Source: Caecitellus pseudoparvulus (taxonomy: Eukaryota > Protista > Bigyra: Bicosoecida). Taken from it: 64,000 bases of DNA. The position numbers and the translations under genes were made by a program. The stretch is taken from assembly GCA_965644315.1 (NCBI GenBank), contig CBFFRQ010000096.1, forward strand, positions 248,001 to 312,000, written 5' to 3'. The notes beneath the pieces are model-generated. The model had not been told where the DNA came from. It saw nothing but the letters and a program-made list of their open reading frames with translations, and made no database searches. Shown here piece by piece: positions 7,201 to 22,938 of this stretch; the first letter of the stretch is position 1, and each line of letters starts with the position of its first letter.

Positions 7201-10200
7201 ACGGCACGGGTGGACAAGGAGCGTGCGAGGCGTGAGCGGCCCTCAGTGATGAGCACACGATTACCAGGAGGCAGGGAGATGGAGGCAACTGTGCTGGAGC
7301 GGCTGCTCTCTGCGTCCTGCTGCGCCAAGGCGGCGAGCTTCCGCGCTGGCGTGGCGCACTCCGACCCAAACAGCTCAACGCAGATGCCGCCACGGGAAAT
7401 GCCGGAGTACAACTCATTATCGGGGTGCCCGTTCAATGACGCAGCGTGCTTGGATGCGACAGCTGCGAGGTGCTGCACCCCGACTTCGCTGCTGAACACC
7501 AGCCCCTGCGCTGGCAGGGACGACGACACGGCCGGCCACCAGGCAGCTCCAACTGTCGGATTGGGCTGCAGCATGGCAGCCGTCGCAGCCGCGCTGTTCA
7601 CGGCATCCCCAGCTGCAAGCAGAGGTAGTAGGGTGGACGTGGCGGGTGCCGGTGGCAGCAGCCGCAGGGTGTGGTGCTGCGCCGGGGCGGAGGCTTGCAT
7701 GGCCGCAAAGCTGCCACGCTGAAGCTGCACACCATGATGCACCAGGGCCGCGGCAAGACTGTCAGTAAACACAGTCGCCGAGGAAGGAGTCCAGCCTAGC
7801 ACCTGCATCTCCCCTGCCGTCGCTGCCAGGGTGACAATCGTGGCGGTGCCAGATGAAGAGTTCACCAGCAGCGCATCTGGGACAGACGGGGCCGGGGCTG
7901 TTCCAGCGGAAGCCCACCCTGCCCGTCCCCACTCCTGGGCGCCTCTGCATGCAGCAGCTAGAGTGCTCGCTGAAGCATTTGGCTGCACGGCGCTGCCCAG
8001 TCCCAAAGCGAGCGCGAGCCTGGATGCGTCCGGGCCGAGGCCGTTCGGTGTCGCGGTGTTCAGCAAGGACGGCATATTTCCAAGCAAGCTGCTGGCTGCA
8101 ACGGCATGCACAGCAGCCCATGAGGCCGCAGGCACCTGCCCCGTTGCAGCCCCGGCGAGGGTTGTAGATGCGGCCACGTGCAGGTTGGCACCAGATGTGC
8201 TCTGTGTGCCTTGCCCCAGCAGACTCGTGTGACTGCCCAGGCGGCGGGACATGAGGCGCATGCCAACTTGCTGGGAAGGCGTCTGCAACGCGGACGCACC
8301 AATTGACACGCTCCAGATGGGCACCAGCACGGCAGAGGCATTCACAGCCCCCCCCCCCGAAAGAGCCAGCGATCCCGAAGACGAGGCAGTAGCCAAGGCG
8401 CCCGTGGCGGTGGCTTGCACGCGGGAAAGGACAGTGACTGCGCCTTGAGTGAAGGTGCTACTGCGGAGAGTGCCTCCCATGGCCCCTGCACTGGCCACAT
8501 CTCGCTGCATAGTGCCTGGGAAGGACGTGACGGGGCCCCAGCGTGGGGGATCTGCGCTGCCCGCGGATGCCAGTGCAGCAGCAGTGGCATGCATCGGAGA
8601 CAAACCTGAAGCAAGGGAGGCAGCCTCCCACGCCAGGGCAGTGGCAGCCATGTCTGCAGTGCACAAGGCTGACTGCCCAGACGCCGGCTGCCGGGCCAGT
8701 GCGAGCTCTGCAGCTGCCCCGTTCGCGCCCCCGAACGGGCCGTACACCGCCGCCATCGTTTCAGTGGCAGACACGTACCAATCTCTGTCCACGTTGCCTC
8801 GTGCAGAGGGGGTAGTGAAGTCTGATCGGGTCGAAGACAGCCCCAGTGGGCCCACCGGTGAACTCCACATGGCTTGGGTAACCTTGCTGGCGCGCTCCCT
8901 CAGTGGGCGTGGCACTTGTTCTGACCATGACAGGGCAGTGGAGGTGGTCACACCCAGGACCGACGCCAGTGTCAGGACGAGGTGAGAGGATGACATGGGG
9001 GAGGCTGACGTGCCGTCTGACAAACTCAGCACACCACCACCGACACCCCACGCTACGGTGCGCTGCTGCACCGGCGAGCTGCTGGCCACAGCGGCCGCCG
9101 CTGCCTGGACATCTGCTGCAGCCATGAACGGCATGTGCCCAGACTGAAAGAGTAGTGTTGGAGGCGCTGCCGTGCCGCCACTCGTGAAGAGGCCTCCGTC
9201 GGAGACGTGCACTGCCAGCGCCCCGCCAGCCGCGACCCAGTGCTGGGGTGGGCCCGCGGCGGGAGTCACGACCAGGCCAGTTGCAGCCACAGCAGGGGAG
9301 ACAGTGACACTCACTCCCTCCGCAGTGGAGGCTGCATCCGGTTCATGGAGGAAGGTGGAGCTCGCAAGCGGGTCCTCCATGTCCACGGCAGACAGGGTGA
9401 AGCGCTGCGGCAGGCCGACGCCAACCTTCAAGGCGGAGGCAGCTGAGTCCAACGCACAGGCAAGGAAGCCAGCTGTGCGGGTGGCGCCCGCAAGCAGTGC
9501 TTGCAGTGCCACTGCTGCGTTCCCTTGGGCCTCGCTGTCAGGTGGGGGCGTGCTGGCGGGCGCGGTGGCAGCCAGCAGACGGCGAAGGAGGGCTGACCTC
9601 CCCACTGCCGTCGTGTTCAAAGGCGAGGCTTTGGCGTCCAAGCGCTGCTGCATAGAAGCCTGGGCTGCCGCGGAGCAAGCTGAGCTAGGCGCAGTGCTCG
9701 CCCACGCGCCATGAGTCCCATTCACACACTCAGACGGAGCTAGCTGTGCAGGACTTGAAAGGCTAGACAACGCAGCTGAGAGGGCAGCGGAGGAGGATGC
9801 GATGCCTGGGGCTCGGCCAGAACTGGGAAGCGTTTCAGCAGCACGCGAGGCAGCAGGTTGAACTGCCAGGTGTGCCACAGCATCAGTCAGGGAGGCTGCT
9901 GAGGATGGCTGAAGTGGTGGTGCCAGGCTCGGCAGGGACATGCCCAGCATGCGCTGTGTTAGTGCGTGCAGGGCGACAGGCATGGCTGCTGCCCACTGGA
10001 CGGCGCGTGCTGCTCGGTACCCCTGCACCTCCACCACTGCTGTGTTGAGATCGCCCACGGCAGACGACCACGCGCTAGTCCACTGCAGGTACACGACCAG
10101 CACCAAGCCAAAGGTGACGAACATGACTGCGAGAGTGGTGCGCCCGATTCCACCGTTCTGACCAGCCAGTTCCTCTTCGTCTTCCTCTTCTGCAAGCTGC

Positions 10201-13200
10201 ATAGCAGCGTCGCTGCTCACACTCTCACCCACTGTGGCTGCTGTGGCAGTGGAGGCGGTGGACATGGCTGCAGATCGGGCACTGCCCAGCAGGTCCACAT
10301 CACGACGCTTGGCCAAGGCCCCCAAACTCTCCCTCCGGCGATCAGTGTGGGCGGGAGATGGAGTGCCACCCGCAGACTGCTCATCAGGCACCACGCACAC
10401 GTGCGCCTTGCCACCCTTGCCGACGACCACAGACACACGCCGCCTGGGTCTCGGTGGTGCGTGTGGGGATCGAGGCCCGTCCTGCTGTGGGTCAAGCATG
10501 CGGTCAGCCATGGTCTGCAACAGGTTCGTGGTCCACTGACGCCCTGCCGTGGACTTTGCCCTGGAGCGGGCTGACGGGCCAGCCTTGCTTCGAGGGCGGG
10601 ACACGGGCCCTGCCTCAGAGCCGGCGCGTGACGCTGGCTCCTCATCCTCAGTTCGCAGGTCATGGCAGCAGTCTACACACGCAGCTTTGGCGTGGGTGAA
10701 CATCTTATACTTGGCTTGGGCCACCACCAGCAAAGTGGTGACAAGGATGACGAGCGTGAGCACCGTGGGCACCAGAAGCGGATACCACAGGTATCCCGCA
10801 AAGGCTGTGCGCGACACGGCAACCGTGACAGTCCATGGTGGCATGACATGACTGCCCGTGGTGTTGGCGCTTCCGCTGGCAGGCGCAGGCAGCACAGACA
10901 TGTCGTCACAGTGCCACACCTGGTCTGTCGCGGCAGCTGGCAGCTCCCACATGCCTCGCAAGCTCTGCCACGGGTCTGCATCGGGTGCCGGGCGGGCAAA
11001 GGCCTTGGCCGAGCAGCGGCTGTGGGAAGCATACCATTCCTGCCACGCTGCCAGGGCGCTGGTGGCTGGGAGTGGGGCGGAGAAGGAGGAGGCTTGACCA
11101 TCAGGCAAGGAGGCTGCACTGGCGGAGCCCCCTTCCCACCACAGCGCAGCATTCTGCCGACTTGCCCTGTGAGCCGTGTACGCGAGGGGCTCTGACAAGG
11201 GGTGTGCAGCGGCAAAGCGGTCAGCCTGGTCCGCCGTTTGCCACGGCAGGCGCAGCAGCGCGGGCTGCGACGAGTCCAGGCCATTTGCCAGCACTGTGCG
11301 GGTGAATGGCGTGGCGATAGTGCCTTCGGCTGCGAGGGCAATTGAGTCCGTGGCTGGTCGGCGGTAGCGGGACGTGCCGGCGAATCGCCTGCGGGCTTTG
11401 GACAGCACTGCTCCACTGCAAGCAGGCAGCGGGTAGAACTCGCCTGTGAGGATGCCCGCTGAAGGTACAGGGCCTTCCATGCCCCCTGCCTCGGAGGGCG
11501 CAGCGAAGGCTTCCCTTCGGCGTGCTGCGGCAGCCTGCACGCCTGAGCTCTTGCCCACGGCGGTTGCGGCGGACGCCTGGCCGAGGATGCTCCCCAGGGA
11601 CCCAGGAAAGTTTAACTGAGCAGATTCCAACCACTGACCTGCTCGTGCAACGGACAGCTGCCACAGGCCATGCAGGGTGGTTGCGTCCACGACAGTGCCT
11701 TGCGCCGGATCGGGGGCGCCTTGGCCCAAGGCCGCGCCATCCGTCATGCTGGATCGAGCAGGTGCATGCAGCAGTTCGTTCACTTGGGCCATGGAGCCTG
11801 GTGCGCCGAGGGAAGGGGAAGACGCATCGGCCGCGCTAGACTGGGCGGAAACGAAGCTGCCTGTGGACAGCCCCACGCACATGTCCGTGTCTTCTTGCCC
11901 GCGCTGCCCGGCTGAGAGGAATGCAAGGGAGGAGCCTGAGGCAAGCACGTCATCTACGTACTGTGCAGCACCTTCCCCTGACACTGTGTGCAAGCGATCA
12001 GACAGCACAGACAAGGGGATAGCCAGGGACGTCACCACCACAGAGCTGCCGCTGCAAGACGCCTCCTGCACTGCTGGTCCCCCAGCGCCCGCCAGTTCCG
12101 CGGCCTCTGCGAGGGTAAAGGCGGCGCCCAGGTGCGCGGGAATGCGATGACGCAGAGTCAGCACGGCCACGAGGTCGTCTGGGCTGCCAGTAATGTTGGG
12201 CGCTGGAGACGCGACTGTAGCCCCAGCGCTATCTCTGCCCCACCCTGCCACTTCCGCCAGGCTGTGCACAGACCAGAAGGAGGCAGGCAAGGCAGCACTA
12301 GAATTGTGCAGGGACGCTGTGGATGAGCCACAACCCCCTGCGGCGTCATTAGGGCGCAGAACACCGGCCAGGTACGGGCGTGCAGCAACCATGGAGCGCA
12401 GCCAGGCATGTGGCTGCGAAGCAGGGGCACACAGGCAACCACGCTGGCGCACTGCAGCGTTAGGGTCGAGCGTCGTGGGGACAGTGCGCTGTAGAATGCG
12501 CCTGGCAACTTCCTGTGGCTCCTGCCCGCTCCCTTGAAGCGTTGTGTTCATGCTACCGGCAGCCTTGGTCGCCAAGGGCAGAAACGCCAGGGGATCATCA
12601 CTGGCACCCGGGCCACCCAGTGCACCACCCTCGTGGGCCCGACTGGAGGCAGCAGCCAAGAGCTGCGCCGCTGGCAGCCTGGTCGACGGCCTGCCCTCGC
12701 CGGGCTGCAGCAGGGCGGCGTGGTACCAGATTGGCACCTGCGTCCATGGGTGGGCAGCGTCGTCATTGGCACACAGGAAGATGCGAGAGGCCAGTGCGGC
12801 CGTAGATGCGCTAGCTTGCCACCACCAGCTGGGCTGAGCCCAAGGCTGTGCAGGCGCGGCACCCCACCGGTCTGCAGCGTGGCTGGGGCTGTGCAAGGTG
12901 GAGGCCGTGCCCGCACCTGCTGGCGAGAGTGGTTCATGTGCAAACGGGGCGGGCGGCGTCCAGTCTTGTTCAAAGAAGCAGGCGCAGTTGTCACCCGTGC
13001 TGGCAGGGGGAGCGGACATCTGGGCAGAGCCATGTGAGTGCAGTGCACCACGCACCGGCGCCTGGAGGTCCTCCCACAGCTGCTGCTGTGCTGTGAGAGG
13101 GGGCGCGGTACCAGCGGGATCGAAGCGAGGCGCCACCGAAGCCCATGAAGACACGTAGGAGGGCGATGCTCCAGGAGCCGCTGAGCGGCGTGCTCCTCCC

Positions 13201-14873
13201 AGAAGCGTGCCCGACGACACATCCAGCACCTCGCCCCACACCGCGTCCCCCCGCCGCCACAGCTCAGCGACAAGCCCAGTGCGGAAGGACCGCAGGCGTG
13301 CTCGAGAACTGTCAAGTGAGGCCTGCGGATCGGCCAGTCGTTGCAAGGCTGCGAACATACTGGTGTTCATCCCTGCGCCGAAGGTGTCGAAGGCATCGTC
13401 ACGCAGACTGCGCGCGATGGAGTCCGCCCCCACCGCGCTGGACAGAGCAGAAAAGGCAGCTGCCTCATGGACGCCAGCCCGCGTGCGAACCCAAGCCCTG
13501 CCCTGCAACTCGGCCCACAGACCTGCTTCCAGCGACCAGCGCTGGGTCTCCTCGGTGACGAGAGTGGCTGTAGAGTTCACGAGGTTCTCCGTGGCAAAGT
13601 CCACGGAGAACGCGCTGCCTACCATGCACACGACAGAAATGAACACAACACCAAGTGTCATGACTGTCAAAATGCATGACAGTTGGATGCAGCGAAACCA
13701 GTGCGACCAGCAAGACGTGCGCACCACCTCAACTTCCGTGGACTTGGGGCGCTTCAGGCTGCCAGGTTTCTCAGACTTGGTGCTGCTTGCAGGGGTAGGC
13801 GGAGCCTTGGACGCCCCCGTGGCGCCCTTTGGCGGGGTACTGGAGCTCTTGACAGCAGTTGGCCGGGCTGCAGGAACTGAAATGCTGCTTGAGCGATCGA
13901 CGCCTTCGCTCCCCTGCAGTGGGTTCGCCACAGTCCGGACGCCTGACGATGTGCCAGATCGGACTGATCGTGCTCCACCGCCACCATCTTTTGGCACAGG
14001 TGTGCCAGCTGATGCATCTTCTCCACTTGCGCCCGATCGCTTCAGTGCGGTAAGAAGTGACCCCATGACTTTCTGGCGCCGATCAAGAGGAAGCGTGGGT
14101 TTGGGCCGCTGGGCCGCTTGTGATTTAGGAGGGGCACTTGCACCAGCTGAAGCAGCATGCTCTGATCCGAGAGCTGTTGACGACCGCAGTTCGGGGCGTG
14201 GAAGCCCTTGGGCAGTGCCAGCAGACTCTGGGCTGGCCTTGGCGGACAAGCTTGACGATGTCGGGCCCGCGCCTCGTGCACTCTTGGAGCCCCCGGCGCC
14301 CTCCTTGGGTGATGTGGGCGGCAGGATGTCTTCTTCTACGCTAGCAGATGCCATCCCTTTCGTCTTGCCTTTTGTAGGTGCAGGCTTGGCTTTCACCGCC
14401 TCTGGCGTTGGGCCAGAGCCACTGGCGCTGGGCTGTCCTTGCTCCTTCATCGCTGACAGCATGGAGCCAAGGATCTTCTTTCGCCGGGAAACGGGAATGG
14501 AGACAGGGCCGCCCTTTGCCTTGCTGGATGGTGCCGTGCTGGGGCCGGGGGAGGGAACTGCGCCAGGCGCAACTGCGCTTGGCTTGGGTGGTGGCCGTGC
14601 CGCCTGGGGAGGCTTGGAACCGGCGTCTTTGTCTGCCGGCCCGGACGGCTTGGGAGACATGACAATGGCACCAACGGACAGTCTGCCAATCTTCCCCTGC
14701 CCAGTCTTACTGATCTTCGCGCTGGCTGGCTTTGGCTTCTCCAACGAAGCTGGCCGTGGTTTGTGCGCGGATGGCGTTTCGGGGGAAGTCTCCTCGGCAG
14801 CTGTTGCCGCTGAGCGGGTCTGTGGATCCGGTGAGGAGCCCCTACACCTTTTTACATCACTGTCTGACTCCAT
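1248..14873 (-). CDS. Giant 4541-aa membrane protein: two TM-luminal domain-TM (Cache-like) modules fused to a C-terminal two-pore (2x6TM) cation channel with EF-hand
   Basis: Uninterrupted ORF. The C-terminal ~1100 aa carry two S1-S6 repeats, pore helices FSEFQSAWITMFVFVTTGENY and NFDTFESAMSTLYVLMLAESWNDIM, and linker EF-hand DDDGSGCLERKEY. Four extra hydrophobic helices lie upstream. The channel call is strong; the Cache call is tentative. Confidence 0.85.
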   Translation of the reverse strand: MESDSDVKRCRGSSPDPQTRSAATAAEETSPETPSAHKPRPASLEKPKPASAKISKTGQGKIGRLSVGAIVMSPKPSGPADKDAGSKPPQAARPPPKPSAVAPGAVPSPGPSTAPSSKAKGGPVSIPVSRRKKILGSMLSAMKEQGQPSASGSGPTPEAVKAKPAPTKGKTKGMASASVEEDILPPTSPKEGAGGSKSARGAGPTSSSLSAKASPESAGTAQGLPRPELRSSTALGSEHAASAGASAPPKSQAAQRPKPTLPLDRRQKVMGSLLTALKRSGASGEDASAGTPVPKDGGGGARSVRSGTSSGVRTVANPLQGSEGVDRSSSISVPAARPTAVKSSSTPPKGATGASKAPPTPASSTKSEKPGSLKRPKSTEVEVVRTSCWSHWFRCIQLSCILTVMTLGVVFISVVCMVGSAFSVDFATENLVNSTATLVTEETQRWSLEAGLWAELQGRAWVRTRAGVHEAAAFSALSSAVGADSIARSLRDDAFDTFGAGMNTSMFAALQRLADPQASLDSSRARLRSFRTGLVAELWRRGDAVWGEVLDVSSGTLLGGARRSAAPGASPSYVSSWASVAPRFDPAGTAPPLTAQQQLWEDLQAPVRGALHSHGSAQMSAPPASTGDNCACFFEQDWTPPAPFAHEPLSPAGAGTASTLHSPSHAADRWGAAPAQPWAQPSWWWQASASTAALASRIFLCANDDAAHPWTQVPIWYHAALLQPGEGRPSTRLPAAQLLAAASSRAHEGGALGGPGASDDPLAFLPLATKAAGSMNTTLQGSGQEPQEVARRILQRTVPTTLDPNAAVRQRGCLCAPASQPHAWLRSMVAARPYLAGVLRPNDAAGGCGSSTASLHNSSAALPASFWSVHSLAEVAGWGRDSAGATVASPAPNITGSPDDLVAVLTLRHRIPAHLGAAFTLAEAAELAGAGGPAVQEASCSGSSVVVTSLAIPLSVLSDRLHTVSGEGAAQYVDDVLASGSSLAFLSAGQRGQEDTDMCVGLSTGSFVSAQSSAADASSPSLGAPGSMAQVNELLHAPARSSMTDGAALGQGAPDPAQGTVVDATTLHGLWQLSVARAGQWLESAQLNFPGSLGSILGQASAATAVGKSSGVQAAAARRREAFAAPSEAGGMEGPVPSAGILTGEFYPLPACSGAVLSKARRRFAGTSRYRRPATDSIALAAEGTIATPFTRTVLANGLDSSQPALLRLPWQTADQADRFAAAHPLSEPLAYTAHRASRQNAALWWEGGSASAASLPDGQASSFSAPLPATSALAAWQEWYASHSRCSAKAFARPAPDADPWQSLRGMWELPAAATDQVWHCDDMSVLPAPASGSANTTGSHVMPPWTVTVAVSRTAFAGYLWYPLLVPTVLTLVILVTTLLVVAQAKYKMFTHAKAACVDCCHDLRTEDEEPASRAGSEAGPVSRPRSKAGPSARSRAKSTAGRQWTTNLLQTMADRMLDPQQDGPRSPHAPPRPRRRVSVVVGKGGKAHVCVVPDEQSAGGTPSPAHTDRRRESLGALAKRRDVDLLGSARSAAMSTASTATAATVGESVSSDAAMQLAEEEDEEELAGQNGGIGRTTLAVMFVTFGLVLVVYLQWTSAWSSAVGDLNTAVVEVQGYRAARAVQWAAAMPVALHALTQRMLGMSLPSLAPPLQPSSAASLTDAVAHLAVQPAASRAAETLPSSGRAPGIASSSAALSAALSSLSSPAQLAPSECVNGTHGAWASTAPSSACSAAAQASMQQRLDAKASPLNTTAVGRSALLRRLLAATAPASTPPPDSEAQGNAAVALQALLAGATRTAGFLACALDSAASALKVGVGLPQRFTLSAVDMEDPLASSTFLHEPDAASTAEGVSVTVSPAVAATGLVVTPAAGPPQHWVAAGGALAVHVSDGGLFTSGGTAAPPTLLFQSGHMPFMAAADVQAAAAAVASSSPVQQRTVAWGVGGGVLSLSDGTSASPMSSSHLVLTLASVLGVTTSTALSWSEQVPRPLRERASKVTQAMWSSPVGPLGLSSTRSDFTTPSARGNVDRDWYVSATETMAAVYGPFGGANGAAAELALARQPASGQSALCTADMAATALAWEAASLASGLSPMHATAAALASAGSADPPRWGPVTSFPGTMQRDVASAGAMGGTLRSSTFTQGAVTVLSRVQATATGALATASSSGSLALSGGGAVNASAVLVPIWSVSIGASALQTPSQQVGMRLMSRRLGSHTSLLGQGTQSTSGANLHVAASTTLAGAATGQVPAASWAAVHAVAASSLLGNMPSLLNTATPNGLGPDASRLALALGLGSAVQPNASASTLAAACRGAQEWGRAGWASAGTAPAPSVPDALLVNSSSGTATIVTLAATAGEMQVLGWTPSSATVFTDSLAAALVHHGVQLQRGSFAAMQASAPAQHHTLRLLPPAPATSTLLPLLAAGDAVNSAAATAAMLQPNPTVGAAWWPAVSSSLPAQGLVFSSEVGVQHLAAVASKHAASLNGHPDNELYSGISRGGICVELFGSECATPARKLAALAQQDAESSRSSTVASISLPPGNRVLITEGRSRLARSLSTRAVTLSRLLAYSQGIATTQASNTLASRFTGSFASAMTAGAADVANVGSGAVLTSMASSLASQTSALQLADMVSTQQYYGGTSPVAGSAERGLYSAASAGLWLPRLFYSLEATLFAVRQASVSPFAPPTVLSTQQAQALLPLLAPAAYGRPLPTYSDNQLSDSPPSTPTAQGGPAAALFTDSSASRGEGYILIPAGLMVASSHGASTSIDGSSGLLQRLLPTESDDVYIASVGGVFGMVSAALNVSSTQTLASLAMGRGSPFIATGGLGPRRALVHSSTLTGGVSSSTAHISAEATAAFLSVAASWATLASGSSVSSTGLSAPALARVVGLAPTAAAASLQALSGYEGPVTATSAEKQHAGFVLTQLQTWAMQAVGALALGDWASLRLGNSLDLIVHCTVHRAPLNEESDLWTNIAFIVAVGAILLSVVLTATITTALAQHARKVRAERLEAQLAAVRQALQKMSVLSPDAAGGSGLAVQQDLAVLSSSLEGKRAAKAAGAGAAPARQPLLSKTLQQVQKDQAASSISQAVRDARSMKREAKAGPLPTSPVSSAAASPQPGAIVKGPLSPRKGRMSKVAGDIVRMVRMSKVLKSGTGALATPAGRSFPKLESVGEDSPGIAESKLSAAGRARRRSSKSKRGSGLSVDVQGAASAADHPDSRRSSGRGSLRSPAARLRGAAASIMAAKRMSTLASPLSPRKSASLPPMSSPLASGMMRSSAVVSAAAAAGQKPGQTEETFDVGIWTTFRMLYPVVRGIVMEGGAWDMYRSRVAAAEQSFSASSQSLGKGKATTMNPLSTPPAATVKNPMANLRRTSTAGGTVLPLSAREQTLFRRARQFIHYYVSDAHPLETLYFEARSHWAREWSNRVVSTKSYTVTVYIFLVLFLGLAFWEAGPTASLAGTIPLTTPAAAVGAAGDLVVGVEGVDMVQSVTDLPPGVTVDGQVGRGNVLFASPASEDTLITIGSNLQAGSPSTASAGTGLATLRMRSFGGAQADSGIVSGWYLQKAYAWSLGILDRGSWGDSIDVAAQENGVPGTQESYAAGDVSSPLSGGSGVDQFGVQREDEWLRGGVLRVELLCLLILVADTLLIWYARGVRRHYVRLFDAAAPWCRRYAKWQSMHHGAVALGMDGYGAEGDSGMTPAKAALLDEEDAADAAIGTCSARVADVLYGLATCGARRRAKYYEEADGKPRAVKREGQLRTLFLVRVVLLFIFVVDWCARVFVGYRTGRTSTLLPVTAILRPLYIIARVPTLRSALGSFSSTLILARRVLALFASFLAVTAGVSIALLSSRSDLRFPVFTDDAAVAAAAGGANEDSPASSGDDAVIVASAADATLAASISALSALASNAAGMAGAVASAAGSGFQRAVSLPQALSTEGDGSGRGFSEFQSAWITMFVFVTTGENYNEVVYRASDTSSVAGGRLAVLFKPMFIVISFIGLFILVSLLIAHFQERFSESESRTREARTQKRRLALVLAFSLLDDDGSGCLERKEYARFLASSGVKTEHYEKLPDRLGPPEFVHLCEYLIVKKNFNFERRSYQSERLIFTMVTKSMNDGLRRLALLGCILRSQQWLQRFFNNELDVKFDSFILGVVIINTWAICLFGTKLGPFIDSVLPIFVLLYALELLLRIAAVGWKRFWYGKKKATRQVVTGASNPAAVAAALSRTRSTESMPSPTGSSHAVHMARTGSLRRIPSSGGAAGSSRMNAAAAAAAAAAASAGSSDDAPEEKQAPFQTAANRYDFFIIVLTIIVALASLFVTTSSTGGFQARLDSVDADSLQTLQVNDLARLSMVLPVLRLFSVVHATRALVFGLIAQAHKFLSILALLLLVMYAFAVLGIWAFAGLMSDLPPSVVGIMRNANFDTFESAMSTLYVLMLAESWNDIMYALVDASNSINPAFYFMAYVALVAVLFSQVFVGITIDVAIEIERERENADDVDEGFTRFMAAYGDRIADESDDDDVEGLLSALKEALEGGSEDDEDEEVTVIG

Positions 14874-15408
14874 GGGCAGCTAGCTGGTCCCGCAACCTCT
14901 CTCAGCGCGCACGTCAGTGAATCCAAGATGTCGCAGCGACACGCAGCGCTGCCTCACGCTCGGAGTGCGTTGGCTGCCCTCGGCACGACTGTTCGGGCAC
15001 AGGCAAGCGAAAACCAGGCCAAGGTACCTTATCGAGTGTCTGCGCCAAGCAGAGGGAACCGCCCAAGGCTGCAGCACTGGAAAACTGCGTGCGCTGGGTG
15101 GACTTGGCAACTTCCTGGCCAGGCCAAGGAAAGCTTCCGAGCTCTCCCGACAAACGTTGGTGTAGAACTTGAAGCCACGGGAGTCTGTAGCCTTTCACAC
15201 AAGGTGCACCGTGAGGGACGCACGCTTCGCGCAATGTGGCGTCCGTTCTATATTGCATGCCTTGCAATCCAGCCTGCTGCAAGGCTGGAGAACCTGACAC
15301 CACGAACTGCACTCTCCCTGTCTAACCCCGCCTTGCTGACGCGGAGCGTTTGGTTCAGGCGGGTCAGTGCAAAGTGCAGGTGTGCCGCGCCTCCAAGCAG
15401 CGTCCACC

Positions 15409-18297
15409 ATGGCCACTCTGAGAGAGCGCATCGCCGCCCAGCGCACACAGTACATCCTCCGAAAAACATCAGCATCAGCCCCAGGCTCAGAAGATCATGC
15501 GAGAAGCATGCCTGCGCCAGCTGGGTTCAGCAGCACCAATTTCCGCACACGGCGAACTTTCCAGTGGGACAGCTCCTCCAGTGACGATGAGGCGGAGGTG
15601 CAAGAGCGAAAGCAGCATTCACGCAGTAGCACAGCACGTTCCCAGCGGCATGGGCTGCAGCCATCCTTGAGTGGAGCGCCCAGCCCTGCCCATCCAAGCG
15701 AGCGTCACAGCTGGCGTTTGGGCCAAAGCTCACCGGCACTCGCAGCAGGTGCTGAGGCTCCCCAGCGCGCACCAAGGACGCCTGGATCCCATGTTCTTGA
15801 TAGTGGCAGCTCGAGCCCAAGGTCTAGCCCCTTGAGTGCCTCCACTGCCGCCGAGGCCAGCAGGGCCGCGTCTGAAGTGCTGAGCGCTGCGCTGACCCCA
15901 AGACAGGTGCGGCGCGCGGCGCTGGAGGCCCACACTGCAAACATGCAGGGGGAGCTGTCCCTGGCCCACCAACTCATAGACAAGCTCAGCAGCGAGTTGC
16001 TGCGTGCGACTGCTGAAGCCGAAGCACAAGCCAAGAGCGCACAGCAAGTCCGCACTGTGTCGGCGCCCGCCACGCCAGCCGCCCCCCCTCCATCTCAGCG
16101 CACAGACAAGAGCAAGCTCCGAGCTGCGGAGGCGCTGAACGCCAGGCTGCAGCAGGAGCTAGATGTGGCCCATGACACCATCGCAGACTTGCGCACGGGC
16201 TTGCAGCGGGCAGAGGTAGCAGCTGCCTCTGCAGTCCAAACTGCTGCAGCAGCACGCGCAGAAGTTCGGGGTGCCGTGGCTTCTGACGAGCGAGTGCAGC
16301 GTGAGATCACCCGCCTGCGCCGAGTCTTTGCTGGGCGGGTGGAGGAAGTGTCCGCAGAGCGGGACACAGCCCTGCAGCAGGTGCGGTCCCTCACAGCCGA
16401 AGCTGCCCTGCTTCGGGCACAGGCTGGCGCAACCTCACAAACCGCCACCTCAACTGCCCAGCAAAGTAGCATTCTAGAACAGCGACTTTTGCAGGCACAA
16501 AGTGAGCTCCGTCAGACCGAGGCACAAGCTATGCAGCACAAACAGTGCGCTCAGGACACGCAGCGCCTCCTGGACGAGGCGGTGGAGCGGAGCCGCAAGC
16601 TGGAGTCACAGCTCCTGGAGCAGCGGAGTGTGGCGGCCAAGGCCCGAGAGGACGCCGCGGCCGCGAAAGCCGCCTCGGACGACACGTCTCGGCGAGTCTC
16701 TCTGCACATGTCGCAAGCGGTGCAAGCACAAGCCTCTGCGTTCACTGAGGAGGCCATTTTGCTTGCGCTGCAAGGCACGTTCACGTGGGATCAAGTCCGC
16801 CAAGCTGAAGAAAGCGCTGAACGCAACATTAGGCGGGAGGTGGACTCTGTTGTTCGTGATTTGCAGCTCAGTCTTCAGCAGGCGCAAGACCAGCTGGAGG
16901 CTCAATCACTTCGCGCAAACTCCCTAGCGCAAGAGCTACAGTCAGCGCAGCTTGAAGCACAAGCGTCATCAGCTGCCCTTGAGGAGCTGCGAAGCCATGG
17001 TCTTCGTCAACATGCTAGCCAGGACAGTGCAGTGCTGGATGCGGTGCAGAAGGACAAGGCAGAGCTGGCGGCGTCCCTGGATGCGGTGCAGAAGGACAAG
17101 GCAGAGCTGGCGGCGTCCCTGGATGCGGTGCAGAAGGACAAGGCAGAGCTGGCGGCGTCCCTGGATGCGGTGCAGAAGGACAAGGCAGAGCTGGCGGCGT
17201 CCCTGGATGCGGTGCAGAAGGACAAGGCAGAGCTGGCGGCGTCCCTGGATGCGGTGCAGAAGGACAAGGCAGAGCTGGCGGCGTCCCTGGATGCGGTGCA
17301 GAAGGACAAGGCAGAGCTGGCGGCGTCCCTGGATGCGGTGCAGAAGGACAAGGCAGAGCTGGCGGCGTCCCTGGATGCGGTGCAGAAGGACAAGGCAGAG
17401 CTGGCGGCGTCCCTGGATGCGGTGCAGAAGGACAAGGCAGAGCTGGCGGCGTCCCTGGATGCGGTGCAGAAGGACAAGGCAGAGCTGGCGGCGTCCCTGG
17501 ATGCGGTGCAGAAGGACAAGGCAGAGCTGGCGGCGTCCCTGGATGCGGTGCAGAAGGACACGACAGAAAGTGTTGAAAAGGGGATGCATGAGAGCCTTGT
17601 GTCTGAACTGAAGCAGGAGATAGCTGATCTGAGCTCGCAACTTCAGGCAAGCAAGGCAACTGTTCGAGACTTGGAAGGTGCTGTAAGCGCTGCCAAGGGC
17701 AGAGCACAGGTGGCTGGCACACGTGCAGATGAACTCCATGGACAGCTTTCTGCCGCAACGACTGCCAAAGACCAAGCAGAAGAAGCTCTCAAGACTATTC
17801 AATCATCCCATGAACATGCCCAACAAGCTCTTCAAGGCAAGGAAGCTGCTTGTCGTGCACTGGAAGAGCAGGTGGTATCGTTGAAGTCTCAGTTGGCTGA
17901 GCTGCGCGCCACGAAGTCACCAGCGGCAGCGCCAGGTCCACAGCGGCCTGCCGCCTCAGGCATCAGACCTGTTGGTGGAGCTGTGCCCGCTGCACTACCG
18001 ACAAAGCCCGCGCCTACAAAAGGTGGCACATTCAAGCCACGTCCTCCCCCTGCAGGTCCCCCGCCCGGGCAGTCGTCCAAGTCAGGGTCTCCTCCTCCGG
18101 CAGATGCAGCCGCTGCCGAAGCCATGCTGGACGATCTCCCGGACATTGATGACTTTGGCTCTGGCCCCCCCACGCCCAAGACGAAGCCCCCACCCTTAAG
18201 AAAACCCAAACTCCCTGGCTCTGCAAAGCCTCTATCGTCAGCATTGAAGCCTGGCCCGGCAGGACCACCCGGGCCACGACCTCCACCGCCAAAGTGA
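15409..18297 (+). CDS. Long coiled-coil protein with 14-aa tandem repeat and Pro-rich C-terminus, function unknown
   Basis: ATG at 15409 (context CCACCATGG); A/E/Q/L heptad-rich sequence; LDAVQKDKAELAAS repeats; poly-Pro tail. Confidence 0.75.
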   Translation: MATLRERIAAQRTQYILRKTSASAPGSEDHARSMPAPAGFSSTNFRTRRTFQWDSSSSDDEAEVQERKQHSRSSTARSQRHGLQPSLSGAPSPAHPSERHSWRLGQSSPALAAGAEAPQRAPRTPGSHVLDSGSSSPRSSPLSASTAAEASRAASEVLSAALTPRQVRRAALEAHTANMQGELSLAHQLIDKLSSELLRATAEAEAQAKSAQQVRTVSAPATPAAPPPSQRTDKSKLRAAEALNARLQQELDVAHDTIADLRTGLQRAEVAAASAVQTAAAARAEVRGAVASDERVQREITRLRRVFAGRVEEVSAERDTALQQVRSLTAEAALLRAQAGATSQTATSTAQQSSILEQRLLQAQSELRQTEAQAMQHKQCAQDTQRLLDEAVERSRKLESQLLEQRSVAAKAREDAAAAKAASDDTSRRVSLHMSQAVQAQASAFTEEAILLALQGTFTWDQVRQAEESAERNIRREVDSVVRDLQLSLQQAQDQLEAQSLRANSLAQELQSAQLEAQASSAALEELRSHGLRQHASQDSAVLDAVQKDKAELAASLDAVQKDKAELAASLDAVQKDKAELAASLDAVQKDKAELAASLDAVQKDKAELAASLDAVQKDKAELAASLDAVQKDKAELAASLDAVQKDKAELAASLDAVQKDKAELAASLDAVQKDKAELAASLDAVQKDKAELAASLDAVQKDKAELAASLDAVQKDTTESVEKGMHESLVSELKQEIADLSSQLQASKATVRDLEGAVSAAKGRAQVAGTRADELHGQLSAATTAKDQAEEALKTIQSSHEHAQQALQGKEAACRALEEQVVSLKSQLAELRATKSPAAAPGPQRPAASGIRPVGGAVPAALPTKPAPTKGGTFKPRPPPAGPPPGQSSKSGSPPPADAAAAEAMLDDLPDIDDFGSGPPTPKTKPPPLRKPKLPGSAKPLSSALKPGPAGPPGPRPPPPK
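17035..17560 (+). repeat. Perfect coding tandem repeat, 42-bp unit x12.5
   Basis: Unit CTGGATGCGGTGCAGAAGGACAAGGCAGAGCTGGCGGCGTCC repeated 12 times plus 22 bp, no visible variation. Confidence 0.97.
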
Positions 18298-18764
18298 TTT
18301 GAGCAGGCCTCGGTGGGTTACTTGAATTGGAATGCATCGGGGAACTCGAGCGAATCCTATGCAAGACTCAGGAAGAAAAAACACTCAGGCTGGCAGTGCT
18401 GCTGCCTGGGGTCTAGTGGCTTGTGACTCGGCTCAGTGCACGGTGCGTCTCTCCGGCATGTACGTCGACGCCAGCGCCACCCCCCCTCAGCGGTGGCTGT
18501 TGCCCCCCTGCAGAATGTAGCAGAAACCCTCTGACGGCACTATCAAAAACAACGCACAAACTTCAAGGGCTACGTTCACGCACCTATTTGGGCTGAGATG
18601 CGGTGCATGTCCTTGGCATGCGCGCATCCCGCCAGATGAGGGCTTGGAGAAGTGCAGTGCACTTGGCTGTCAGTTGCGGCCGCAAGACCTTTCGCCATCC
18701 TGCCCCCCCGTGATTATCGTGAGTGCCCGCAGCTTCAGCAATGCGTGTCTAGTCCATGTGTGTG

Positions 18765-18883
18765 TGAGCAGTGACGATTCGATGACGAGACCGACCGGGA
18801 CTCCTCAGCGTTATGTTGTTGTGTTCCGCATGCCCCTCGGGGCATGCTATGATGCATATTTTGAGGCATTTGTCTGAGCCACA
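18765..18883 (+). ncRNA. SNORD15: Box C/D snoRNA, U15 (SNORD15; snR13/snR75 targets) homolog
   Basis: C box GTGACGA at 18771; guide GATGACGAG + D' CCGA; guide GAGGCATTTG + D box CTGA at 18874. Both guides complement LSU CAAAUGCCUCGUCAUC. The D+5 rule gives yeast Am2281 and Gm2288 equivalents. Confidence 0.9.
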
Positions 18884-19047
18884 CCACACTACAGCGGTTG
18901 AACAAGTGTGCATTAGTTGTGCATAGCAGTGTCATCACTTCCACCCCGCCCTCTTTCCCAGATCACGCTACACCTGTTGACAGGCTGAGTGGGAGTGGCT
19001 GGTGTGGCTTTGAAGGTGAGTGTGGAGGCCACAGGCCCCAGCAGCAG

Positions 19048-19122
19048 CAGCTGTGAGGACAGTATTTGCTACTCTTGATTCCATAAATGACGACATTTAC
19101 AATCACCAAGATCTCTGAGCTC
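19048..19122 (+). ncRNA. SNORD24: Box C/D snoRNA, U24 (SNORD24/snR24) homolog
   Basis: C GTGAGGA at 19053; guide TATTTGCTAC + D' TTGA; C' ATGACGA; guide CACCAAGATCT + D CTGA at 19115. Complements LSU AGAUCUUGGUG and GUAGCAAAUA (yeast Cm1437, Am1449). Confidence 0.9.
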
Positions 19123-19292
19123 CGCCCTCGAAACGGATGCCAGGATCGCTTCCCGAGTTTGAAGCCATCCACACCTCTTGCCCTTCTCGACACAGGCGCT
19201 GAGAAAAAGCACCTGCACGCTCACTGCGGCCCCGACACCCCCTTAACTATAATAATGTGAGTCATGTGGTCCCTCGTTTCTGCCTCCTTTGC

Positions 19293-19394
19293 CAGCGATG
19301 ATGAAAACGGTGGATGGGCACGGCTCGCCGCTGTGCTTCTCGAGGCTTTTGCCACTGAAGACCATAACGAACCACCTGCCTTCCTCCAGAGCTG
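19293..19394 (+). ncRNA. Candidate box C/D snoRNA guiding SSU Am420-equivalent (snR52/SNORD83-type target)
   Basis: Terminal stem CAGC/GCTG; C ATGATGA at 19298; guide CTGCCTTCCT complementary to SSU AGGAAGGCAG; non-canonical D box CAGA at 19387. D+5 falls on yeast A420. Confidence 0.55.
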
Positions 19395-19664
19395 TGTGTT
19401 GTTTGCTTGTGTCGTGCAGCGGCGATGTGAGTCGCTGATGTTCTCGGTTGAAACGCATAGTTCACTCTGTAGGGCCGCACGCCCGCTGCGGAGAACACCA
19501 ACCTTCGACTGAGACTCTGCATGTCCTGCTGTGCTTGTTGGGGATGCCTATGACGAGTTGACGTTCCTCTCCATGATGGATATCGTGATTTCACATACGC
19601 ATAGCGGGCTGGCTCAACCAAGCCATGTCCGCGCCCCGAGGCGTTGTCCCCCTGTGGTTGTGCT

Positions 19665-19746
19665 GGCTCATGACGAATTGTGAACCGGGAATCTCTCTGA
19701 TCTATAATGATTATTAAAAATCACGTGTCATCTTTGAACCGAAGCC
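19665..19746 (+). ncRNA. SNORD79: Box C/D snoRNA, U79 (SNORD79)-like
   Basis: Stem GGCT/AGCC; C ATGACGA at 19670; guide GGGAATCTC-T + D' CTGA at 19697 (complements LSU GAGAUUCCC); C' ATGATTA; D CCGA at 19739. Confidence 0.8.
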
Positions 19747-19861
19747 GCCTTCCACCCCCTTTTTCAGGTACTTTGCAACTCTCGCATCCAAGGCTTGTTG
19801 TTTTCCCCGAGCTCAGTCGATCAAAAAGGTGTGTGCATGTCACTTGGCAGGTCTTTCGAAG

Positions 19862-19954
19862 CAGAAAATGATGATTCGCTTAATCGCGATTCGACTAGAG
19901 TCGCTGAAACTTCTTTCTATCATGTTGATATACACCCTTGGCTGTCTGATCCTG
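19862..19954 (+). ncRNA. SNORD53: Box C/D snoRNA, U53/snoR37-like double guide
   Basis: C ATGATGA at 19868; guide GACTAGAGTC + D' CTGA (LSU GACUCUAG, yeast Um2421 site); C' ATGTTGA; guide CCCTTGGCTGT + D CTGA (LSU ACAGCCAAGGG). Confidence 0.9.
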
Positions 19955-20062
19955 CTACTGCCTGCTGCGCCAAGCGACTGCCTCATTGCGCGGCGATGAA
20001 CCATACCCCCCCACCCTTTGCAGAGTGCGTGGTTCTGCCCTCATGACCTGCTGTCCTCGGCA

Positions 20063-20146
20063 AGCGTGTGACGATATTACGGAAATTCAACGCTTAGCTT
20101 CGGCTCTGATGAATTGTTCCAAATCGAGCTTTTTAATTCCGATGCT
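20063..20146 (+). ncRNA. SNORD36: Box C/D snoRNA, U36 (SNORD36/snR47 SSU target) homolog
   Basis: Stem AGCG/TGCT; C GTGACGA at 20068; C' CTGATGA; guide CGAGCTTTTTAA + D CCGA at 20139 complements SSU UUAAAAAGCUCG (yeast Am619). Confidence 0.85.
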
Positions 20147-20164
20147 GTGCCGTGCCCTTGGAGG

Positions 20165-20247
20165 AGTGCTGAGGTGTGATGATTGTCGTTGCCGCCCCAG
20201 TCTGACTGTCGATTGAAGAAAGGCAACATGTGTCTGACCCCAGCACT
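20165..20247 (+). ncRNA. SNORD31: Box C/D snoRNA, U31 (SNORD31/snR67) homolog
   Basis: 7-bp stem AGTGCTG/CAGCACT; C GTGATGA at 20176; guide TGCCGCCCCAG + D' CTGA at 20202 complements LSU P-loop CUGGGGCGGCA (yeast Gm2619, E. coli Gm2251); D CTGA at 20234. Confidence 0.9.
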
Positions 20248-20347
20248 TCCCCCACGCCCGTCTTGTCGGCACACTCACCCTGCCTCGCGGAGCCCTCACT
20301 CGCTTCTCTCTTATTCCACAGTTACAGCCATGAATGCACTTGTTGTC

Positions 20348-22560
20348 TCAAGAGTCACCCATGAACATACTAGCAACTTTGCACGCTTCATGATCCTTGT
20401 GCCCGTGAAAGAGGTGCACACTATGAGCAGCAAGCACATGGGCAAACCCTTCTGCTTTCGTCGGCGCCTGAAATGCGCTTGGGCTGAAGCCACTGCGGAT
20501 CACGCGGTGTGGCACATGCCGCCGATCTGCTATGTTAACGAGTCCCGGAAGCTCAAAAGGGCAGGTTGCACGAAACATGTTCAAGTGGGTTGCTCTTGCT
20601 ACCGAGCCGGGCAGCACGACAGCAATCGCAGTGGCGCCATGCTGCTGCGCAAGGGTCAGCCAGTCGTGGCGAACTTCCACAGAACGGTTGGTTGCGTCAA
20701 TCACAACACTCCCTCCTACCTGTAGAGCATTTGCTGCAGCCTCAATGCACTTCCGCTTGCTGCCTAGTTTGTCTTGGTTCACAATGGTCATGCTGGAGCC
20801 GTGCAGGCGTGCCCACGTGCTCTTGCCGGAACCTGGCGGACCCACCAGCACAGTCAACGTGGGCCCTTCATGCGAGGCACAGATGTCATGAAACACCTGA
20901 TCCATCGCTGCTGAAGTGCTGTGAGTGCTGGCGTTCAAGTCTCGGTGCGGAACAAAGCCCAGCGCACGGTCCACAAGCTTTGGCGCATCCAGGGGCGACC
21001 CGTGCACTCCAGTGCAGCACCCGGCAAAGAGTGCGTTCGGCGTCAGGAAGGGAACGCCTACATTCAAGGCTAGTTGTAAGTCACTGCATGAATGGTCTGC
21101 TTTCGGGGCTGCAGCTCGCTTTCCACTGGCCGGAGGCACGTACCCTCCCGCAGCAACCTTGTCCTCCTTCGACCTTCCAGCTGCGTCACCCACGAACGCA
21201 GCCATGGGAGGTGGGGTCAATGGAGAGGGGGGTCTGCGGGCAGCGTAGCACAACTCCTGTGCCAGCATCCACATCCCAGGTCGTGGCTTGCGAAAGAAAT
21301 CGGCTCCGTGTGTCGCTGCGAGGGTCAAAGTTGGGACTCCGGCGGCTTCGAGGGCGGCAGAAATACCGGCGAGGCGATCGCGCAGTAGGGGGGCTCGTGT
21401 GGCAGCCTTAGCACCACTGGCACCGCTTTGGTTGGTCAGGAGCACGATGGGTATGCCTGCTTCGTGCACGCAGCGCAGAACTGAAGGAACGCTGCTGTGC
21501 CACCACCCCCAATCGTCTGCACTGCTTGGGAATGCCCGGCCAGACTTCACAACTCTGACCACCGTGTCATCGACGTCCAAGGCAAGCATGGGCCCAGAGT
21601 CATACCCCTTTGGCGGTTCCGCTTGTTCCGGCCACCCTTGCCAGCGTGGGCTGACGAGCACAGCAACGTGACCCCAGTGCTCGTACTTGTGCAGTGGGGT
21701 GACGGGGGGCAGCACAGCCTTTGCGGCTGGACAGACATCTCCCCCCTCTGCAGCTGCAGTGGACACATGCTTCTGGGCTTGTGGCTTCTTCGAAAACATG
21801 GCTGCCAGGCCAGATTGTTTGCCAGACGTGGAGGCGGCCGAAGCTGCTGGCACGCACTCACCCTCTACGCCGGCAAAACCAGGGACCCACGCGCCGTCTC
21901 CCTGGAGGGAGATCCACTCGCCACGAGGTAGAGATGTGCAGCTACCACCCTCCGGAGTCTCCTTGCGCCACGGCAACCGGAGTTGGGACGGGACGTGAAA
22001 GCAGCTGTCCTGTGCAGCAGCTTGCAATGCCCGCTGCAACGCGCTTGGCATGTTAGGATCACTGGATGCTTCCTGGGCCTTCTGTGCTGGCCGTTTTGCC
22101 CTTGGCTCTGACGCGGTTTGCTCAGGTTGGCGGGTGCGCTTTTGTTGGCCCCCACAGGCTCCTGGACCCGCCATGTGTGGCACGAGGTACAGCCCGATAT
22201 CATCAGGGTGCCCTTTGCTCAAGGCGTCCAGCGCCCAGTCCACGCGCAAAACAGGACCTGTAAATTCACCCTCGTCCATCACGGCGCGAAGGACCTGGAC
22301 AGCTCCAGCTGATGCGTCTGCCTCCACCAATGCCGCCGTGCATGCACTCGGAGGGAGAGCCTGAGGCTCAAACAGCACCTGTGCCCCGGCACCCCCAAGC
22401 AACGAGCTCAGCCCCGCGATGCGCTGCAGAGACAGGCAGATGAAGTGGATAGGTGCAGATGTAGCGTTTTCAACGGAGAGTACCTTACCGCCTCGCTGAA
22501 CACCTTTCGATGCAGAAGCAGATGCCAGCCATGTAAGGCTTTGCCTGCGGCTTTTGCCAT
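20348..22560 (-). CDS. PNKP: Polynucleotide kinase 3'-phosphatase with N-terminal BRCT-like domain
   Basis: HAD motif LDVDDT, TNQSG, FRKPRPGMW, FVGDAAGR, DHSCSD; kinase P-loop GPPGSGKST, VVIDATN. Predicted ATG at 22560 and phase-0 intron 22488-22424. Confidence 0.88.
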
Positions 22561-22938
22561 GCTCTTGTTGCGTATGGATTAACGGAAAGACGGATGCACA
22601 AGGTACGGCTTGAAATGGTGGCCGAGAAAAACCAAACCAAGTAGGAATGAAGAATAAGATTAGCGCTGCGCTGGTGTTCGGCTTGTATTGTATGGCGACG
22701 GCTGCATCTCTCTGCCATGGCGTGGTGCATTGCGGAAAGCCCGGCCACAAACAAGTCCTTCAAGGTAAAAAGCATGCGCGAGCATGTGTCACAGGTAGAG
22801 CATCCGTTTCATCTAGACTCTTTGCTCCATGTCTGCGCGCCGCTGCTCGTTGGCACTCACCCAGCAGAACAAGCCACTGGCTAGTGTGCGGAACTTGGGT
22901 TTGAACCAGCTGCTCGGTGCAGGCGTTTTGAGCCGAGC

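Follow-up and report, generated by a model that had tools for sequence, protein, structure and literature searches.

Non-coding genes that host small nucleolar RNAs (snoRNAs) of the box C/D class are familiar from vertebrates, where GAS5 carries U76 (one U24 site), U77, U79 and U80. Here we analyzed a locus that resembles vertebrate GAS5 and SNHG1/UHG as a non-coding host of C/D guides, at positions 18298-20347 of a 64,000-nucleotide (nt) stretch, hereafter the window, from a 30.6-Mb eukaryotic assembly (contig C96). The locus has the highest AT content within the window and is flanked by a coiled-coil open reading frame (ORF) on the + strand and the polynucleotide kinase/3'-phosphatase (PNKP) gene on the - strand. 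RNA contigs, guide pairing and conservation point to a stand-alone non-coding snoRNA host gene of five exons at about 18568-20350, a reading to which we give a probability of roughly 0.88. Unlike the vertebrate form, with one snoRNA per intron, the third intron holds three or four snoRNAs and the terminal exon two.

Fungal host genes have been described as Neurospora clusters I-V and as snR78-72, snR57-55-61 and snR41-70-51 (PMC2780460, PMC3596301). As in these clusters, the present locus combines a non-coding multi-intron host, C/D RNAs only, short ORFs, alternative splicing and both intronic and exonic members, and the order is conserved while intron positions shift. In contrast, the membership differs, only the snR75 and snR78 targets being common with cluster I, and the conserved polycistronic intron and the stramenopile-like organism set the locus apart. 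Clusters that mix intronic and 3'-exonic snoRNAs and are cut by RNase III are known in S. pombe, plants, and animals (PMC12508059). The order found here is similar, with an intronic snoRNA followed by snoRNAs in a probable 3' exon (20024-20350) that is retained after splicing of intron 4, whereas no Pac1/Rnt1-type enzyme was found in this genome. The initial annotation had presented the mixture of modes as new; the same three papers already describe it, and the locus is a mixed-mode host gene of a known kind in an unannotated lineage.

Host gene structure and splicing

Four RNA runs (X15, X16, X17, and X20; X15 is a seawater metatranscriptome) gave contigs at the locus, and these are assembled contigs of long-RNA libraries, from which rare forms drop out. 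For comparison, we used the syntenic loci of three related species (L134, L135, and L138), located via PNKP orthologues that are 44-46% identical; L134 spans the 3' half of the cluster only. Exon 1 (18568-18718, with an approximate 5' end) is covered by X15 and X17 contigs starting at about 18568-18573 and is connected by the joint 18718>18962 to exon 2 (18962-19015, 54 nt), for which X15 holds both a joint and a loose end. Intron 1 (18719-18961, 243 nt, GT..AG) contains one snoRNA; its joint is in X15, and the same intron occurs in L135 and L138. Intron 2 (19016-19195, 180 nt) also contains one snoRNA, and the loose contig end seen at 19194 matches the exon 2 end (joint 19015>19196). Exon 3 (19196-19256) and exon 4 (19768-19828), each of 61 nt, were identified in X15 contigs, and the joint 19256>19768 in X15 defines intron 3 (19257-19767, 511 nt) as a polycistronic intron with three conserved snoRNAs and one candidate. 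Intron 4 (19829-20023, 195 nt) contains one snoRNA, and a loose end at 19828 continues with 20024-20051. The terminal exon, or slowly spliced last intron (20024-20350), contains two snoRNAs and is the deepest unspliced piece in X15, being found also in X16 and X20; its 3' end is approximate and abuts the PNKP stop codon.

The spliced model comprises 654 nt in five exons, and its longest ATG-initiated ORF has 57 codons. A small peptide encoded by the exons was considered and rejected, as it is not conserved. The dedicated, spliced, non-coding host that had been proposed from the letters alone is supported by the RNA joints, the lack of any ORF above 57 codons and the conservation in the three syntenic relatives. 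Of the six introns proposed with it, 18719-18961, 19016-19195, and 19829-20023 agree exactly with the RNA contigs. By contrast, 19257-19419 and 19427-19767 are one 511-nt intron because of the joint 19256>19768, and 20025-20321 was unseen. The 7-nt micro-exon (19420-19426) that would separate the former two is absent from the spliced joint and was rejected; L135 and L138 have no internal splice sites within the counterpart of intron 3. The proposed mixture of single- and multi-snoRNA units is supported, with intron 3 rather than a U36+U31 intron as the polycistronic one.

An alternative acceptor of intron 3 was found in X15 (joint 19256>19390, i.e., after 19389), with a depth of 8.1 versus 9.5 for the full intron 3 joint. 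It lies inside box D (19387-19390) of the Am420 guide described below, and the relatives have no such acceptor because the box there is CCGA. Use of this acceptor would spoil the Am420 snoRNA in approximately half of the spliced molecules, as estimated from this one run.

U36 and U31 could both lie in a true last intron, 20025-20321, following a 1-nt exon, if splicing were late and the product short-tailed or unstable and so left unassembled. Good donor-like and acceptor sequences occur at 20025 and 20321, L135 has a donor-like hexamer directly after the acceptor, and zero-length-exon complex introns are known in fungal clusters (PMC3596301). Additionally, the U36/U31 pair is intronic in L119, one of the metagenome loci (with L035, L073, L079, and others) that came from a scan for dual-guide U24 (120 loci). 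Against this, no joint for 20025-20321 exists among the RNA contigs, and the depth of the 20022-20350 piece (16.4) is accounted for by the spliced path 19828>20024 (about 11.4) plus the unspliced path (5.3). Two further runs hold this piece unspliced in part, L134 and L138 have no good donor, and L134 and L135 have no clear acceptor. We consider a last intron fairly unlikely; U36 and U31 are most likely exonic rather than in the U36+U31 intron of the initial annotation.

It is very improbable that the cluster is the spliced 3' untranslated region of the upstream coiled-coil/proline-rich gene (15367-18297, +), which shares the strand, is syntenic in L135 and has its stop codon only 270 nt from exon 1, since no listed RNA piece of the four runs covers 18309-18567, upstream pieces end at 18291-18308 and those of two runs start at 18568-18573. 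That ORF is probably not the host, since its RNA contigs stop by 18308, and the coverage gap and the starts favor the host as a separate gene, with the proviso that contigs cannot show transcription starts.

The snoRNAs and their predicted targets

Eight box C/D snoRNAs, plus a ninth candidate, were identified on the + strand of the gap, and the eight are predicted methylation guides. The six snoRNAs named at the outset (U15, U24, U79, U53, U36, and U31) are all present where they had been placed, and the suspected Am420 guide is real as well. This earlier count was incomplete, missing a U77/snR60-type guide (19432-19515) and the candidate at 19545-19643. End boxes C and D and internal boxes D' and C' are present, several as variants (CCGA, CAGA, TTGA, CTGT, and CTTA). 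Guides were scored by pairing the sequence that precedes every D or D' box with the small subunit (SSU), 5.8S and large subunit (LSU) ribosomal RNAs (rRNAs) and the U6 and U2 RNAs of this same genome, with 120 boxes elsewhere in the window as the control. A score of at least 10 was reached by 11 of 18 box positions versus 3% of the control boxes, none of which reached 12. Three of the 18 positions were mis-set D boxes and remained without a target when corrected. Antisense elements within the 9-20 bp range and placing the base five before the box (D+5) on a target were found for the snoRNAs and were unconvincing for 19545-19643. The predicted targets number nine in the LSU, three in the SSU and one in U6, and the claimed complementarity to conserved rRNA sites is confirmed as pairing with the genome's own rRNA at known methylation sites.

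U15 (18769-18880; SNORD15, 37.7 bits) is a dual guide predicted to target LSU G2142 through D' (18791, 9 base pairs [bp]) and LSU A2135 through D (18874, 11 bp), which correspond by offset mapping to Arabidopsis Gm2289 and Am2282. U24 (19049-19121; Rfam SNORD24) would likewise guide two sites, LSU A1354 (D' at 19075) and C1342 (D at 19115), by 13 bp each. The Am420-type guide (19293-19394), with a structured interior and box D CAGA at 19387, pairs perfectly over 10 bp with SSU A380, the equivalent of yeast Am420 and human Am468 and the target of snR52/SNORD83; it is kept in L135 and L138. At 19303-19375, this RNA has a conserved 5' element, for which no target was found, and covarying internal hairpins. 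A further pairing of its D' guide with LSU A2545 was rejected, as the segment sits in a hairpin and is not conserved.

The U77/U80/snR60-type snoRNA (19432-19515) pairs over 12 bp with LSU A724, equivalent to Arabidopsis Am826 and the yeast snR60 site; it has a variant D' (19467) and box D at 19509, is kept in L135 and L138, and its L135 copy matches Rfam snR60/Z15. Two of its segments, 19443-19453 and 19487-19496, are kept in relatives without a clear rRNA target and may pair mutually. An H/ACA reading of 19433-19600 was discarded, as the relatives carry a C/D RNA at that place. U79 (19665-19746; SNORD79, 24.7 bits) is predicted to direct D' (19697, 9 bp) to LSU A2180, the equivalent of Arabidopsis Am2327 and human Am3809, and D (19739, 13 bp) to U6. 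The U52/U53 dual snoRNA of the plant snoR37/Z157 type (19863-19953) pairs by 11 bp each with LSU U2275 (D' at 19904) and C2219 (D at 19946) and matches the Rfam models snoZ157 (31 bits, U52/U53 clan) and TtnuCD15 (30.7).

U36 (20063-20146) pairs over 14 bp from box D (20139) with SSU A576, equivalent to human Am668 and yeast Am619. Its second element, before D' CUUA (20093), pairs over 10 bp with SSU 588-597 and would target G591, the equivalent of human Gm683, a SNORD19 site. G591 lies 15 nt past A576, matching the spacing of human Am668 and Gm683, and the element is conserved in L134, L138, and L119; position 20106 is part of box C' and not a D box. U31 (20172-20240; snoU31b 30.5 and SNORD31 24.5 bits) is predicted to guide LSU G2462, equivalent to Arabidopsis Gm2620, by 12 bp from D' (20202). 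Guide scoring yielded no target for the element before box D in the U77-type RNA, in U31, or in the candidate.

The LSU sites map onto measured Arabidopsis 2'-O-methylation sites (A724/A826, C1342/C1447, A1354/A1459, and G2462/G2620; PMC8053127), with a constant offset of +147 for A2135, G2142, A2180, C2219, and U2275 and of +102 to +105 or +158 for the remaining sites. In Rfam searches, as the initial annotation had suggested, C/D families were matched, and all 16 listed matches in the gap (E-value mode) were to + strand C/D families, with SNORD24 above its gathering score (45.1 vs 41). U36 and the Am420 guide were unmatched by their own Rfam models, and both pair with the SSU (14 and 10 bp, respectively). 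Two other perfect rRNA matches, of 11 bp at 18965 and 13 bp at 19762, have no C/D context, are unconserved and were taken as chance.

The candidate RNA at 19545-19643 has box C at 19550, D' at 19573, C' at 19585, D at 19636 and a terminal stem, and is invariant across four strains. Its only pairings are of 9 bp, either with SSU A347, which is one base away from the Gm436 site, or with LSU A2874. We found no counterpart in the L134, L135, and L138 relatives and no Rfam match, and we regard it as a candidate lineage-specific C/D RNA. A SNORD100 identity was rejected, as the register is off by one base and the Rfam match is lacking. A genome search for a canonical guide gave no box C in the one match examined.

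Strain variation separates the snoRNA bodies from their surroundings. Across four further strains or populations of this species, 1 of 796 snoRNA positions varied (0.13%), compared with 20 of 498 exon positions (4.0%) and 14 of 486 intron-spacer positions (snoRNA 1/796 vs elsewhere 34/984, Fisher p 3e-8). In L134, L135, and L138, the cluster is at the same place with its order and splice layout kept, while the exons are unalignable. This pattern indicates purifying selection on the snoRNA bodies and not on the exons.

The host is presumably transcribed by RNA polymerase II. U15, U24, and U52/U53, single in their introns, would be trimmed out of debranched lariats; they end 84, 77, and 74 nt, respectively, before the acceptor, a spacing of 74-84 nt that is typical of splicing-coupled assembly in vertebrates. 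U79 ends only 25 nt before the acceptor of an intron that also holds other snoRNAs, and U36 and U31 lie outside any intron seen spliced, so that these three would need endonucleolytic release. An endonuclease cut followed by exonucleolytic trimming would free all three or four intron 3 snoRNAs as well as the terminal-exon pair. Several contig ends (19668, 19864, and 20173) precede a box C by 2-4 nt, as expected for 5'-trimmed precursors, although contig ends are no evidence of RNA ends. With each mature RNA as guide, fibrillarin would methylate the ribose of the nucleotide that pairs with base five before D or D', and the spliced exons would be a by-product.

Several observations weigh against the host-gene model and its proposed processing. 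The splicing evidence comes from contigs of one environmental metatranscriptome (X15); the three other runs gave unspliced pieces only, plus one strand-switch chimera. No transcription start for the host is shown by the contigs, and no mature snoRNA ends or methylation were observed in the contig data. Only U24 passes the Rfam gathering score, with SNORD15, snoZ157, snoU31b/SNORD31, and SNORD79 below it. No spacer hairpin for cleavage was conserved or above shuffles, and the RNase III search gave one domain only, in a Dicer-sized frame (1816 aa). The chimera, an X17 contig, joins exon 1 (18718) to the opposite strand of 18929-18984 and is probably a reverse-transcription product.

Pairing of U79 with U6

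The box D element of U79 pairs over 13 bp, with one G-U, with the genome's own U6, placing the D+5 base on the equivalent of human A70. This nucleotide is methylated in human and, via sno530, in fission yeast (PMC10484740); Arabidopsis U6 A65 is methylated with no guide assigned (PMC8053127), and mouse Snord23 is a candidate A70 guide (PMC11863803). Like U79, sno530 and Snord23 address the same nucleotide by 12-13 bp with one non-Watson-Crick pair. Unlike them, the U6 guide here belongs to an rRNA guide, U79, of which it makes up the box D half.

We consider that U79 probably guides U6 methylation, judging from its pairing and its recurrence. The same U6 guide is present in the U79-position RNA of L073, L079, and L119, and two other U6-complementary 13-mers in the genome were set aside, as they have no C/D context. 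The main alternative, a chance or vestigial pairing that directs no methylation, is unlikely. In its favor, the element has decayed to 5+3 or 5+4 bp in L134, L135, and L138, the three nearest relatives, as tested against the U6 of the window's genome. Also, one domain search detected no LARP7, on which U6 methylation depends in humans and fission yeast; the single RRM_3 match resembles La. Chance, however, accounts poorly for a 13-bp score reached by none of the 120 control boxes against all targets, or for a D+5 base that falls on a nucleotide whose methylation is known from human, fission yeast, and Arabidopsis. Nor does it readily explain the same element in the same snoRNA at three distant loci, where position -2 is C against a canonical U6 G, while here it is A against a U6 U. 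In the U6 gene itself (L140 1491-1608; Rfam 52.7 bits), the internal stem-loop carries one additional loop base, and the 3' part is divergent.

Gene order across lineages

Most of the 120 sampled dual-guide U24 loci share no neighbor with the cluster, and some do. In L119 (69% GC), all eight snoRNAs have positional counterparts, in the same order and within three polycistronic introns, with some guides diverged. L079 carries U24, Am420, U77, and U79; L073 carries U15, U31, U24, U80, U79, and U52/53, one per intron; and L035 carries U15, U31, U24, U52, and U80. The Vps33 gene neighboring L035 nests among ciliates with an SH support of 100. L073 is probably a ciliate as well, because it shares U15-U31-U24 with L035, matches Tetrahymena models and has a kinase whose named matches are mostly ciliates; a tree of this kinase left L073 unplaced. 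The L073 RNAs match the models TtnuCD8, 10, 13, 14, and 15 in numerical order, and the TtnuCD10 and TtnuCD15 models of Rfam also match the window. TtnuCD10 (U15) is reported as the fourth RNA of the largest Tetrahymena cluster, and TtnuCD7, 12, and 15 as adjoining other snoRNAs (PMC3273799). Judging from the names, this cluster is probably TtnuCD7-15, and the core order of the present locus probably corresponds to it. It is reported as intergenic and without a spliced host, unlike the locus in the window.

The present genome is most likely that of a heterotrophic stramenopile. It has a TPI-GAPDH fusion gene (L162 1468-3093), a lineage marker typical of stramenopiles but known from cercozoans and one apusozoan as well (PMC6198282). 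Its DDX47 has stramenopiles among the top named matches by identity (Fibrocapsa 73% and Nannochloropsis 72%), although the DDX47 tree places it in an environmental clade apart from those stramenopiles.

These results suggest a surviving polycistronic locus of the stramenopile-alveolate ancestor, with the core U15..U24-U77/80-U79-U52/53 and with U79 as an ancient dual guide for the LSU and U6 A70, a proposal to which we give even odds. Under a simple model with 60 guide families, L073 would share this membership and order by chance with a probability of about 1e-4, and L035 and L079 with one of 2e-4 each; these are per-locus values, uncorrected for the number of loci examined (up to 120, partly redundant). 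The competing explanation, that common guides clustered independently in ciliates, is somewhat unlikely and has several observations behind it. SnoRNAs move often (PMC3511168), and most of the U24 loci lack a shared neighbor. The order partly differs (U31 has moved, and U52 and U80 are swapped in L035), the content of the Tetrahymena cluster is inferred from names, and the flanking protein genes are not syntenic. It is opposed by these low, uncorrected chance figures and by the sharing of the U79+U6 dual guide. Within the ancestral-locus proposal, the core order would have persisted while the intron layout changed among all-intronic, polycistronic-intron, exonic, and intergenic forms. A still older origin, tied to the U24/U76-U80 adjacency of animal-like contigs and GAS5, is doubtful. 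We found no account of the cluster in several lineages in the literature searched, which is weak evidence given its partial coverage.

Other arrangements were noted among the U24 loci. In six animal-like contigs (L060, L088, L092, L108, L115, and L133), U80 lies 1.0-2.4 kb downstream of a dual-guide U24, recalling U76..U77/U80 of GAS5. L058 (2003-2830) has a duplicated intron cassette in which an Am420 guide comes after the U24 copies. In L121, U24-U80 is followed by a guide for LSU G2249, and a G2249 guide precedes U24 in L079.

In the surroundings of the locus, the PNKP gene (20348-22750, -; Pfam PNK3P and AAA_33) is convergent with the host. About 13 near-identical 42-nt repeats, encoding a 14-aa unit, lie at 17007-17561 inside the coiled-coil ORF. 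An intronless single ORF of 4541 aa (1248-14873, -) has a C-terminal part resembling a two-domain ion channel with an EF-hand-like loop, preceded by a very long alanine-rich extracellular region. The U2 gene of this genome (L141 1501-1695) is divergent, including bases near the branch-point recognition region.

Taken together, the host gene supplies a missing annotation in a lineage that has received little study and provides predictions for twelve rRNA methylation sites. Two points look new, both as predictions: the likely sharing of the core order with ciliates and the U79/U6 dual guide. The latter offers a concrete place to look for a U6 A70-type guide in lineages without an assigned one. 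If the ciliate order holds, snoRNA gene order would have survived a very deep split, contrary to the view that mobility has erased such organization (PMC3511168).

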